Shown here: positions 24,287 through 45,870 of the stretch, piece after piece
Numbering within the stretch: position 1 is the stretch's first letter
Layout: each line of letters opens with the position of its first letter
Assembly: GCF_000150275.1 (NCBI RefSeq)
Contig: NW_002060945.1
Coordinates: forward strand, 5,487,101-5,551,100
From: Trichoplax adhaerens
Taxonomy: Eukaryota > Animalia > Placozoa
Reading direction: 5' to 3'
Length of the DNA: 64,000 bases
Made by a program: the position numbers and the translations under genes
Notes under the pieces: generated by a model
The model's input: only the letters and a program-made list of their open reading frames with translations
Told to the model about the DNA's origin: nothing
Databases searched by the model: none

Positions 24287-27200
24287 GTACGGAAATTTCC
24301 TCCGTTCGAAGTTGGAGCAAAATGCCGCGTTTTATATGGTTATGAGGATCCAAATGAAAATGTTAGTCAAGAAAACTGCTTGTATTCTAATTACAGCAGC
24401 TACATATCTAACTTGCTAATGAATTATTTACATATTCATCTAACCATAAATGAATGTTGCAAAATTCATGAATAATTTATATAGGAAAAATTACGTAATC
24501 AGATAATCAATTTACTATAGTTAACTCAGCGCTAGTTTTCAACTTTTATCGACAATTCTACTTGGTCTTGTTTCATAGTAATATTAATTATAATTCAAAA
24601 TCTCGTAAAGACGGTCATTAATTTTCTTCAAATGAAGAAAATGATCTTTGATCCTATTTTATCTTAGTAGTCTATTTGAATTGGCTAATTTCTTAACCAA
24701 TTACTATTTGCTAATTTTATAATGACTTCGATTACATTACTGTACGGTACTTAAAATGAACTGATTTTCTCGATTTTTTTTTTTGTCTGCAGAGCCTCAG
24801 CTACGATATCGGCAATGTCGTTACTGTTTCAAAAATATGCCAGGTAAATTGAGTTGGAATTCCATTCCATTATCCAATAATTTCAATCTTTAATTATATA
24901 AAGCTGATTCTACTCTGATTTACGGGCATGTAAGCTTGTATACGAAATATTCTAAGCAAGTTTTAGTAAAAGTAGTCATAGATATCGTTAACCTCAGATC
25001 CTCATAGAAAATGCTTTTCCAGTAATACCGTAAACTTTATAATTTCTCCCTAAACTAACGCTACTTTTAAACTGATTGATGATCAGCCTGATTCCCGATG
25101 GTGCATTGTAACAGCAGATAATAAAAAACAAGGCAGAATCCCTTCTGCAATCCTTGTTCAATGTGACAAGAAGCCAGTGGATGGACTAACTTGCGAGTGA
25201 GCAAATTTATTATAGCTCTAAAGTTGAAAACTGCCTTAATCTTGGGCCTACTATGATTTGATCTTTCAATGAATTTAGAACTATAAATTAATATTACGTT
25301 TACAGCTTTTATCATGGAAGGATTACGAGGGAGGAAAGTGAAATAAGGCTTAAAGACATGGGTGAAGGAACATTTTTAATGAGAGAAAGTGTTCATAAAG
25401 TGGGACAATATGTAATGAGCGTGAGGTACAAACTTACAAGCTATCCATATAAATTCCGTCCTAACATTTACATCATTAAATGCTTCTAAAGTACTTTCGT
25501 TTCGTTATAACTTGTATTATAAAGCCCATTTTAAGATATTTTCTTATAATTATGCTACCCACAGTCTGGAAAAAGAGATAGCCCATTACTTCGTGTACTT
25601 TACATCACCTGAATATATGGTAACTATTGACTTTGAAGCTTACTTTCCTAGCCTTCACGGCTTAATCCAGGTACAGCTGAACTATGTTGGATATATTTAC
25701 ATATTGATCTCCCAATTATGCTTAACATTTGTAGGCAATTTTAACCCCTTTTATGTACTAACCTAACTTAACTCTTTCCAGTATTATAAATCTTATATCA
25801 GTTCTGGAATACCTACGCTATTGGATAAAGCTCTTCGATGTCCACAACCAAGACAAATATTAATCAATTATAATTTTTTTGCTGAAGGTACCGTAATCGA
25901 TTACTCTTACTAGACCTTTATCATACGTGATAATTTTTTCCATTGGATATACTTATAGCATAGGATTCAATAATTCAGCTGAAACTTTGGTGGATTTGTA
26001 ACAAGTTACTTTCTATTTATGCTTTAATAATTTACTATTTCGCACAGCGGGATGGTTAATACCTTTAACGGAAATCACACACCGCAAACAAATATCTTCA
26101 CTAGGTAGATTTGGAGGTAAGAATTTCCTATTGATTTCAAAAATTGCGGATATATTTTAGTTACAAAAATTCACTTCACATGTGCAGATTGATTTGATAA
26201 TGGGTGATAAAAGTTATAAATAAGCCTAATATAATAATTTATCACTCTATTGGATAATTTTGAAGAGGTATCTAGTGGCAGTTACAGAGGACGGGAAATA
26301 TCAATTAAATCAGGAAGACCCGATTCAATTATTATTCAAGAAGCACTGTTACGTCAAGCGTCTACCCTAACGTAATGCTATTAATAGAGTTAAGCTTCCA
26401 TTTCTTAATTATAAATCGAGAATACAGTTTTCTGCTTTTAATATAAAATCGGAGCTAGATTTGATGTATACATGAGATTGGCATTTCATTGAAGTACTGG
26501 AATAAATTGAATTCCATACTTTTAAAGACCTATAGATTGATTACTGCCATTTTAGATTTGGTGATAATATCTTTGCGTCGCATTTTAATCCTAAGAAAGA
26601 TTTGACCTTATGTATGAGTATGCAATGTTGTTTATATCTTATTAAAGTGCAATTAGATTGTATACTTTAAAGGCTGATAAAGATTAATTTCTAGTTAATT
26701 CAGATTTGCTCAAACTATCTTTGTGTTATATCTTAGATCCAAGAAAAGGTTTATTCTTAGGATCGAGTACTTAATATGTATTACCTTCGTTTTTAAAGTC
26801 TTTGCCAGATTCGAATACAGACTTTAAAAATTCATTTTGATTGGTTACTGTTGTTTAAGATTTTGGTAACTAGAATAGATTTGAAAATCATTGGTATAAA
26901 GACTAATACGTACTTACAACCATTTAGGCATCTGCATCATAAGAATATTATAGAATTTATTGGTATTACTCTGGATGATCAACAAGACATCAGCTTAGTT
27001 ACTGAAGCGGTATCTGAGGTATCGATCATTTGAGAATTTTTTGTAATTTCATTTTAAATCAAATTTATAATTACTATCGTCATACTAAATCCCTAACACT
27101 CACTTTAGATTTCGTTATTGAGCTATGTTCGTCGATGTGGTCTAACTGTGCTAAAGGAGAATGTTTTAGTGAACTTTGCACGGTAAGTATACTTCGTACG

Positions 27201-28156
27201 TGGTTTTTGATGATATTTATTCAATGTTGGTTAGAAATATAAATTATTTTTTTGGTTCAATTTGTAGTGACATTTGCTGCGGAATGTGCTATATTTCTGA
27301 GAAAAATTTTATATACAGGTAAAGTAATAGTGACTAGTCTTTAAATTGCTAAACATGAAGGGAGTTATGAAGATGTATAAAATTTCTATTGATTATTATC
27401 ATATTTAGAGATGTTGCACTACGCAATATAGCCTTGGTGAATAACCAAACTGCAAAGGTAGGTAATGATTTAACAGCGACACAAATAACATTCCTGGTGT
27501 GGTTAATAACAAGTATATGCATTATTTTTCTTGGTAGATTTCCAATTTTAATTTTGCAATGAAAGCGAGTAGTTATCCATTTCCGTTACATTACCACTGC
27601 ATCAAATGGATGGCACCAGAATCCATAAAAGATGAGGTAATTGATTCTTTTATTTGACGCTAATTTAAAGCTGCAATAGATTAGGACTTTTGCAGGCTCT
27701 ATGTGTATATATATATACAATTTGGATCGTTGAAGCGGTTTATATAATATTTTGGCTCAATTTTGGTAACAATATTACTGCTATTCGACACCTTTAGTCA
27801 TTCACTAGTCAATCTGATATCTGGAGTTATGGTATTTTGCTATGGGAATTATTTTCCTATGGATGTCAGCCTTATCCTCAGCGCGTAAGTGAATACTGTA
27901 GCGCTATTTATTTTCAATGATGCTGATTGTGTAGTTGGAATTTAATTTCTATTCCCTATTTTAGTCAGAAGATGAAATATTAGGCCTCGTTGAAGGCGGT
28001 TTCCGCTTAGATTGTCCGAAGGGTTGCCCTACGAGTATGTATGATATTATCACGAGTTGCTGGGATATTTTACCACAGAATAGGACGACATTTGAAAAGA
28101 TTAAGCAGTTATTGTCGAATGCAACTATCGACACAAGCACAAAATCAACCCGATAG
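24287..28156 (+). CDS. CSK-family SH3-SH2-pseudokinase, copy 1 (start exon not identified)
   Basis: 15 phase-consistent exons: [19 protein letters not shown] (SH3), [20 protein letters not shown] (SH2), [66 protein letters not shown]; TAG at 28154-28156. Intron positions match copies 2 and 3. No internal stop or frameshift found. Confidence 0.88.
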
Positions 28157-45100: not shown

Positions 45101-45870
45101 GAAATGTTCTACTATCGGACAACGAAAAAGCTAAGGTTAATATTAGTTATAATCTTGCTTACATAGAAAGATACGATGTGTCTTTATAATTTCGACAAAA
45201 GCACTATTAGAATTTTCCCTCTGGTTAAAATTGTGACTGATTAATTTGATTACCAGATTTCAGATTTTGGCTTAACCATTCAATTAAATAACGAAGCAGC
45301 TCCATCACTTGGCACTAGAAAAATTGCTGTGAAGTGGACTGCACCAGAGGCTGTGAGATCGCAAGAGGTGGTAATTCATTTGCTACAAAAACAATTTGAA
45401 GTTTGCTAAGAATTTTTATTTATATTTTAATGTTAGCTCTTCTCTGTAAAATCGGACGTTTGGAGTTTTGGTATCGTTTTATGGGAATTGTATTCATTTG
45501 GACGTATTCCGTATCCGAGAGTGGTACGTAACAACGTTTCAAAATAAGTGGGTATCATATGTGAGAAATTTAGCCTTGATACTTTGTTATATTTTCTCAG
45601 TCGAAAGATGAAGTAATGGAACATATTGAAGAAGGCTATAGAATGGATTGTCCTGATGGTTGTTCTGAAGTGATCTATCAGCTAATGAGTGATTGTTGGA
45701 ATTATAAGCCGGAAAGCAGACCTAGCTTTCCAAGGATGAGAGAAATCTTGAGAAAATTTTCAGAATTACGATTTCCAGCTTTGTTAGAAAGACTTGATAG
45801 CGCTTATCGAAAACATAAAATCTCAGATGCAAGTCAAAGAACTATTAAGACTTCTGTATTGCAAATATAG
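42142..45870 (+). CDS. CSK: C-terminal Src kinase (CSK)-like tyrosine kinase, catalytically intact, copy 3
   Basis: MSAVS|[19 protein letters not shown] (SH3); [27 protein letters not shown] (SH2); [31 protein letters not shown] (CSK hallmark), [51 protein letters not shown]. No activation-loop Tyr. Stop at 45870. Confidence 0.93.

Follow-up and report, generated by a model that had tools for sequence, protein, structure and literature searches.

Can a kinase gene that has lost the residues of catalysis be kept for a function, and if so, for what function? This question is raised by a 64-kb window of the genome of the placozoan Trichoplax adhaerens (the whole stretch of DNA that was analyzed, to which all positions refer), in which three SH3-SH2-tyrosine-kinase genes, called here copies 1, 2 and 3, are arranged in tandem on the + strand. 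As judged from their sequences, copies 1 and 2 form a lineage-specific family of CSK-derived "dead" kinases; they are real, anciently duplicated genes that derive from copy 3, encode complete proteins with an SH3, an SH2 and a kinase fold, and are under purifying selection, the dead domain included. Copy 3 is the true CSK ortholog and is predicted to be the working CSK of Trichoplax. CSK turns Src kinases off, and its pairing with Src is among the oldest tyrosine-signaling switches and is older than animals.

Gene models were constructed by listing the stop-free segments and choosing, for each junction, the frame-keeping GT..AG pair that gave the closest match to a full-length relative. There are 16 coding exons in each gene, including a mini first exon that lies 0.6-1.8 kb upstream of exon 2 and consists of 10 codons in copy 1 (22718-22747), 4 codons in copy 2 (31105-31116) and 5 codons in copy 3 (42142-42156). 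All introns are bounded by GT and AG, no stop codon occurs in any of the three models, and 14 intron positions and phases (0,0,2,2,0,1,1,2,0,2,2,0,0,0) are common to all three copies. An initial annotation of the window had described three same-strand paralogs with matching introns, and copies 1 and 2 as having 15 clean exons without stops; the paralogy, the introns and the open frames were borne out, and the exon count was corrected to 16, as the mini first exon had been overlooked. Because the mini exon of copy 1 lies upstream of the exon taken earlier as its first, the locus starts at 22718 and not at 24287. The predicted products comprise 471, 484 and 493 residues, and the models are as follows.

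22718..28156, + strand: copy 1, predicted CSK-derived pseudokinase gene; splice model, 16 coding exons, 471 residues
Exons of copy 1, + strand: 22718-22747, 24287-24361, 24793-24843, 25087-25196, 25306-25425, 25565-25670, 25782-25887, 26048-26116, 26266-26371, 26928-27018, 27109-27182, 27268-27318, 27409-27457, 27538-27636, 27798-27884, 27965-28156
31105..36438, + strand: copy 2, predicted CSK-derived pseudokinase gene; splice model, 16 coding exons, 484 residues
Exons of copy 2, + strand: 31105-31116, 32888-32962, 33362-33412, 33645-33757, 33868-33987, 34114-34225, 34334-34439, 34587-34655, 34717-34822, 35154-35244, 35335-35408, 35484-35534, 35625-35673, 35757-35855, 36030-36116, 36199-36438
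42142..45870, + strand: copy 3, bona fide CSK ortholog; splice model, 16 coding exons, 493 residues
Exons of copy 3, + strand: 42142-42156, 42755-42829, 42964-43014, 43321-43430, 43529-43648, 43722-43824, 43937-44039, 44129-44197, 44314-44416, 44619-44706, 44811-44884, 44965-45015, 45087-45135, 45257-45370, 45437-45523, 45601-45870

No further CSK copy was found elsewhere in the window or in the genome, and the only extra match was a second contig (G000:C1342, L004) in which positions 35330-37821, the 3' part of copy 2, recur at 97.5%. For the alignment, the substitution rates and the tree, the joined spliced models served as input, and the whole-protein database searches were performed with the orthologs from Trichoplax sp. 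H2, in which each copy has one full-length model and all three are labeled "Tyrosine-protein kinase CSK".

Copy 1 ortholog in Trichoplax sp. H2: P0152 = RDD37197.1, 7 of 461 aligned residues differ from the window
Copy 2 ortholog in Trichoplax sp. H2: P0151 = RDD37198.1, 4 of 484 residues differ (480/484 match)
Copy 3 ortholog in Trichoplax sp. H2: P0088 = RDD37190.1, 2 of 493 residues differ (491/493 match)

The descent of the three genes was examined in a maximum-likelihood tree of 32 rows that was rooted on Syk and included six placozoan sequences. The copies grouped with the CSKs and not with the Src, Tec or Syk kinases, and they belong to the CSK family by descent: the CSK clade was recovered with a support of 100/98, and the six placozoan sequences formed one clade inside it (100/100), in which copies 1 and 2 were sisters (100/100) and copy 3 was sister to that pair. 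The stem of copies 1 and 2 measured 1.08 changes per site compared to 0.46 for copy 3. This topology and these stem lengths indicate that the duplications are placozoan-specific, in accordance with the lineage specificity that the initial annotation had supposed, and that the pseudokinase lineage has been accelerated. At the protein level, copies 1 and 2 share 60.7% identity, and each shares ~41% with copy 3. A database search with P0151 returned P0152 at 59%, followed by CSKs at ~36%, and the closest relatives of P0088 were animal CSKs at 40-50% identity.

The catalytic motifs were read after aligning the copies with 14 animal CSKs and were mapped to CSK numbering. The motif positions in the three genes, all assigned from this alignment, were:

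26098..26115, + strand: copy 1 Gly-rich loop, S-L-G-R-F-G, first Gly changed to Ser
26298-26309, + strand: copy 1 beta3, Lys retained
26346..26363, + strand: copy 1 alphaC, L-L-R-Q-A-S, Gln for Glu236
27544..27552, + strand: copy 1 N-F-N for D-F-G
34637-34654, + strand: copy 2 Gly-loop, first Gly changed to Ser
34749..34760, + strand: copy 2 beta3, V-S-I-R, Arg (AGA 34758-34760) for Lys222
34797..34814, + strand: copy 2 alphaC, L-L-H-Q-A-S, Gln for Glu
35763..35771, + strand: copy 2 N-F-N for D-F-G
44179-44196, 44346-44357, 44391-44408, 44829-44846 and 45260-45274, + strand: copy 3 intact Gly-loop, VAIK, alphaC Glu, R-S-R-G-R and DFG, respectively

Site by site, the comparison with the animal CSKs was:

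Gly-loop: GxGxxG in animal CSKs; intact in copy 3; first Gly replaced by Ser in copies 1 and 2
beta3 Lys222: Lys in CSKs, copy 3 and copy 1; Arg in copy 2
alphaC Glu236: Glu in CSKs and copy 3; Gln in copies 1 and 2
Catalytic loop: HRDLAARN in CSKs and copy 3; Y-R-D-V-A-L-R-N in copy 1; H-R-D-L-A-L-R-N in copy 2
DFG: D-F-G in CSKs and copy 3; N-F-N in copies 1 and 2

Four changes are therefore common to copies 1 and 2 (DFG to NFN, alphaC Glu to Gln, first Gly of the Gly-loop to Ser, and AAR to ALR), with beta3 Lys to Arg found only in copy 2 and HRD to YRD only in copy 1. The kinase domain of both copies is thereby without the Mg-binding Asp of DFG and without the alphaC partner in the Lys-Glu salt bridge. 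At Lys222, Glu236, Asp314 and Asp332, the residues are K, Q, D, N in copy 1 and R, Q, D, N in copy 2, so that neither has the canonical catalytic set, and K, E, D, D in copy 3, in which GKGEFG, VAIK, the alphaC Glu, HRDLAARN and DFG are all intact. One or more of the three residues beta3 Lys, HRD Asp and DFG Asp are missing from each of copies 1 and 2, which is how a pseudokinase is defined by sequence. When the sequence was re-read, the NFN and the AGA codon stood exactly where the initial annotation had placed them, and the alphaC Gln and the altered Gly-loops were present as it had stated; its classification of copies 1 and 2 as pseudokinases and its motif list for copy 3 also held. Its description of a broken Gly-loop needed to be narrowed to the loss of the first Gly, the rest of GxGxxG being retained, and the YRD of copy 1 and the ALR of both copies are additions to its list.

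The wider pattern of conservation is in accordance with these lesions. A total of 187 alignment columns were at least 90% conserved among the CSKs, and copy 3 kept 141 of them, copy 1 kept 101 and copy 2 kept 98; CSK-invariant columns were kept at ~53% in copies 1 and 2 versus 75% in copy 3. The conserved sites that had changed in both copies 1 and 2 numbered 74, and the same derived residue was present at 53 of these, which fits a loss that preceded the split of the two copies. The lesions common to both likewise arose, by parsimony, before that split, as had been proposed earlier. Among the 236 related kinases mapped, the copy 1 and copy 2 proteins were the only ones within the CSK clade without the catalytic residues, and in a sample of ~150 CSKs, all those from outside Trichoplax were catalytically intact. 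A Tyr is present in the activation segment of both pseudokinases and in none of the CSKs.

The coding sequences of copies 1 and 2 carry the signature of purifying selection. The pairwise ratio of nonsynonymous to synonymous divergence (dN/dS) was 0.18-0.30 by four methods at a synonymous divergence (dS) of ~1, and a codon bootstrap gave 0.22 (0.16-0.29), with no replicate reaching 1. By domain, the ratio was 0.28 for the SH3, 0.12 for the SH2, 0.27 for the linker, 0.15 for the N-lobe and 0.22 for the C-lobe, and only the last nine codons of the tail looked unconstrained. So low a pairwise ratio rules out that either lineage evolved neutrally for the greater part of the time. Identity at the three codon positions was 0.75/0.80/0.59, and the exon that encodes the activation segment was the best conserved at the DNA level (85%). 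In the stretch from beta4 through beta5 to the hinge, 28 of 29 residues are identical between the two copies despite many third-position changes (DNA identity 80%), which points to constraint on the protein; gene conversion was ruled out for this stretch because the synonymous differences occur throughout it. All 2000 simulated neutral copies had picked up stops, even when substitutions were as few as 0.1 per site.

The introns of copies 1 and 2 had a global alignment identity of 0.775 compared to 0.770 for shuffled introns, in line with the earlier remark that they have diverged substantially. Intron identity was rejected as a neutral yardstick because these values show saturation only. Between the window (H1) and H2, for which a mean dS of 0.024 has been published (PMC6057997), the residue differences were 7, 4 and 2 for copies 1, 2 and 3 versus ~25-27 expected under neutrality, an expectation that is rough because it rests on the published mean dS and not on the local dS. 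The initial annotation had named dN/dS as a check on its proposal that both pseudokinases were kept under selection; the value of 0.22, far from 1, the ratios below 0.3 in every domain and the intact H2 orthologs agree with that proposal.

Pfam identified SH2 and PK_Tyr_Ser-Thr domains both on single exons and on the whole H2 orthologs, and the SH3 is divergent and falls under the Pfam cut-off in all three copies (for P0151, 20.2 bits versus 22.9). An AlphaFold2 model of P0151, with a predicted local distance difference test score of 82 and a predicted template modeling score of 0.75, consists of five strands in residues 16-72, followed by the SH2 and a bilobal kinase domain. Its six best matches in the PDB were all chains of 1K9A, the structure of full-length CSK, which has six of them, with ~455 columns aligned, and its root-mean-square deviation was much lower to this CSK than to Src or Abl. 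The order SH3-SH2-kinase was found with neither a lipidation signal nor a C-terminal regulatory Tyr: the pseudokinases begin with M-N-D and M-M-K, and the tails of copies 1 and 2 contain no Tyr. Both phosphate-binding Arg residues and the betaD His are retained in the SH2 of copies 1 and 2, and the FLxRES arginine reported earlier is in place.

The action of CSK on Src depends on a set of docking residues, Arg279, Ser280, Arg281, Arg283 and Phe382, which are uniquely common to CSK and CHK and whose mutation abolishes the action on Src and not that on an artificial substrate (PMC10016382). All five are invariant in every animal CSK aligned and are retained in copy 3. In the two pseudokinases, the corresponding sites are:

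27127..27144, + strand: copy 1 alphaD docking-motif remnant, R-R-C-G-L for R-S-R-G-R (alignment; PMC10016382)
35353..35370, + strand: copy 2 alphaD docking-motif remnant, H-E-C-D-L for R-S-R-G-R (alignment)
Phe382: Phe in CSKs and copy 3; Tyr in copy 1; Ser in copy 2

Arg281, Arg283 and Phe382 are thus replaced in both pseudokinases, Arg384 and Arg389 are likewise gone in both, and Arg279 survives in copy 1. By their docking residues, and likewise by their catalytic residues, copies 1 and 2 are not predicted to be CSKs by function. This loss is an addition to the motif list of the initial annotation, which had called the C-lobe intact; the motifs of the fold are indeed kept, but most of the CSK-specific docking residues are not.

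Possible substrates for copy 3 are encoded in the same genome. At least five Src-family-like kinase genes are clustered at G000:C1408:1913749-1995059 (1.91-2.0 Mb; L001/L007, L002/L008, L005, L006/L010, L009), each with an SH2-kinase or kinase part in one uninterrupted frame (287-427 residues, single exon) and a Tyr in the C-terminal tail. The presence of these genes indicates that CSK substrates exist in Trichoplax, and the cluster represents an expansion, specific to the lineage, of likely CSK substrates.

With regard to what the pseudokinases do, we favor, with a probability of roughly 0.55, the reading that they are non-catalytic, selected, CSK-derived proteins with an SH3, an SH2 and a kinase fold that act as phosphotyrosine-reading adaptors, CSK competitors or scaffolds. 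Because both Arg residues and the His of the SH2 pocket are intact, phosphotyrosine binding is to be expected, and the intact pocket and the strongly constrained dead domain together point to phosphotyrosine-dependent adaptor, competitor or scaffold roles. In such a mechanism, copies 1 and 2 would act without catalysis, their SH2 would bind phosphotyrosine sites, the SH3, which is as CSK-like as that of copy 3, would be part of the adaptor module, and the remodeled kinase domain would function in binding or as an allosteric module. The most likely outcome is that they would compete with CSK, either at the sites that recruit it or for its ligands, or would act as scaffolds within that pathway; direct clamping of Src kinases is less likely than either. 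A bolder version, which we offer only tentatively, is that these are the first known CSK-family pseudokinases and serve as phosphotyrosine-dependent antagonists or scaffolds of CSK-Src signaling, for example by occupying the recruiting sites of CSK and so keeping an expanded Src-family set active, with the gained activation-segment Tyr as a possible regulatory phosphosite.

Several observations weigh against the favored reading. The BC loop of the SH2 differs from that of CSK in the pseudokinases, and the SH2 specificity position (CSK Glu127) is also altered. The HRD Asp and the catalytic-loop Asn are kept in both copies and the beta3 Lys in copy 1, and the loss of activity is deduced from residues alone. 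The neutral expectation for the H1-H2 comparison is, as mentioned, a rough one. The H2 models were produced by MAKER from both transcript and protein evidence and are therefore no proof of expression. A profile of the last exons of copies 1 and 2 matched only two T. adhaerens fragments, a blank with respect to other placozoans and not an absence, and since no ortholog turned up beyond Trichoplax H1 and H2, retention is demonstrated within one genus only. Finally, exon 10 of copy 2 is one base shorter in contig C1342, through a deletion at position 35348 of the window and 19 bases from the end of the contig. This is probably an end-of-contig error; if it were real, one allele of copy 2 would be frameshifted and broken. 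The same contig carries A306V and T460A in copy 2, and the former is the residue of the H2 ortholog.

The pseudokinases could also be unexpressed, slowly decaying duplicates, that is, true pseudogenes, and the possible 1-base deletion on C1342 as well as the reference annotation of T. adhaerens, which holds only fragments of the genes, would suit such an origin. This is highly improbable, as a dS of ~1 and randomized introns have left 16 exons, all GT-AG sites and the open frames in place, dN/dS is 0.22 and below 0.3 in each domain, simulated neutral copies never stay open, and intact orthologs are present in Trichoplax sp. H2. The two copies could instead be atypical but active kinases, with catalysis by a metal-independent or rearranged mechanism; the N-lobe and the hinge, which are the most constrained parts, fit this, as do the retained HRD Asp, catalytic-loop Arg and Asn, Phe of the DFG position and APE motif, and the beta3 Lys of copy 1. 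The changes from Asp to Asn and from Glu to Gln replace acids by amides and preserve shape, and some predicted pseudokinases have proved to be active. However, three or four independent catalytic elements have been altered together, one of these changes, DFG Asp to Asn, is a standard means of making a kinase dead, and copy 2 is without the Lys as well, so that an active enzyme is quite unlikely.

The initial annotation had suggested that the two copies are catalytically dead decoys or scaffolds, with vertebrate CHK/MATK, which can inhibit Src-family kinases by non-catalytic binding, as the model; as decoys, they would bind these kinases directly and inhibit them with no phosphorylation involved. 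In favor of the decoy, the copies are CSK paralogs next to an active CSK, tight binding without catalysis is the means by which CHK inhibits Src kinases (PMC10016382), and Trichoplax has the five or more Src-family-like genes whose tails carry a Tyr. The docking surface argues against it: residues that do not vary among the aligned CSKs and copy 3 have become R-R-C-G-L and H-E-C-D-L, with Arg281, Arg283 and Phe382 replaced and Arg384 and Arg389 lost in both, which weakens the CHK-like decoy. CHK itself has all the catalytic residues and offers no precedent for a dead enzyme. The decoy proposal was therefore not upheld, and we consider it unlikely. A rival to be taken seriously beside the adaptor, competitor or scaffold reading, even if its probability is low, is that copies 1 and 2 are allosteric partners of copy 3; heterodimers formed through the SH3 or kinase domains would tune the activity of copy 3 or its access to phosphatase. 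The three genes are adjacent, many pseudokinases are known to regulate an active relative, and where a protein self-associates, its paralogs often retain that contact. CSK itself homodimerizes through its SH3 in competition with phosphatase binding (PMC10016382), but the SH3 domains at this locus are divergent.

Compared to known systems, copies 1 and 2 are closest to CSK itself (human CSK, PDB 1K9A). They share with it the domain order, the lack of an N-terminal Gly for lipidation and of a regulatory tail Tyr, a place inside the CSK clade and a predicted structure that best matches full-length CSK, at ~32% identity. They differ from it in having lost the DFG Asp, the alphaC Glu and the first Gly of the Gly-loop, and in copy 2 the beta3 Lys, as well as Arg281, Arg283 and Phe382, and in having gained the activation-segment Tyr. 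The adaptors Crk, Grb2 and Nck resemble the proposed mode of action, in which an SH2 reads phosphotyrosine and an SH3 binds Pro-rich ligands without catalysis, but they have no kinase fold, whereas the unit under selection in Trichoplax includes a large conserved dead kinase domain. KSR, HER3/ErbB3, the JAK JH2 domain and STRAD likewise originated from active kinases, have a fold under selection and miss canonical catalytic residues; they belong to other kinase families, none of them the CSK family, and none has an SH3-SH2 in front. KSR has Arg at the position of the beta3 Lys, as copy 2 does. CHK/MATK, like the Trichoplax pair, stems from a CSK duplication confined to one lineage, and it relies less on catalysis in acting on Src kinases (PMC10016382). 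However, its duplication took place independently, in vertebrates, and CHK/MATK retains the full set of catalytic residues as well as the docking motif shared with CSK, and the Trichoplax copies keep neither.

No description of these Trichoplax genes or of any CSK-family pseudokinase was found in the literature covered, a scope outside which the main pseudokinase survey lies. As lineage-specific pseudokinases are common, the finding is unsurprising in kind. If true, a selected non-catalytic offshoot of CSK, in an animal that is among the simplest, would be a natural experiment on the CSK scaffold without catalysis and without Src docking, and would add a family to the pseudokinase catalogue. 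The naming of all three H2 proteins as CSK and the T. adhaerens annotation, fragmentary for all three genes, would mislead counts of CSK genes and conclusions on Src regulation in placozoans. In the T. adhaerens annotation, copy 1 is represented by the 84-residue fragment TRIADDRAFT_8256, and copy 2 by TRIADDRAFT_23036, all 107 residues of which match the final two exons of that gene (100% identity), and by TRIADDRAFT_62480 on the second contig.

The H2 model of copy 1 differs from ours at one further place:

26556..26617, + strand: candidate cassette in copy 1 intron 8, site of 21 residues that the H2 model adds between alphaC and beta4

In the window this stretch is 62 nucleotides long and would shift the frame; the cassette is doubtful and reflects either an indel between the lineages or a wrong H2 model. 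A separate sequence, P0092 (75 residues, from a 1065-bp Logan contig), is by eye about two-thirds identical to the last exon of copy 3, with the long C-terminal tail included, and probably represents CSK in a further placozoan lineage; no counterpart fragment of copy 1 or 2 turned up beside it. It came from a database search with the last exon of copy 2, in which most hits were fused multi-kinase models and short fragments and which also gave P0088, P0002 and P0003.

Other features of the window were observed around the three genes. Between copies 2 and 3, positions 38750-39753 contain a tandem repeat of 144 bp in 7 copies with 92% matches, which lies in a stretch richer in G+C (0.435 versus ~0.33). 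Stretches at 38061-38420, 49631-50084, 54459-54716 and 62121-62375, dispersed on both strands, translate as runs of T-V-Q-Y-C/S-T-V and look like a short-period repeat element scattered across the window. The upstream neighbor at 12130-19900, on the + strand, resembles a UPF1-type RNA helicase, as judged by eye from translated segments only, with a Cys-rich zinc-knuckle segment at 13528-13854 and a helicase segment at 18420-18680.

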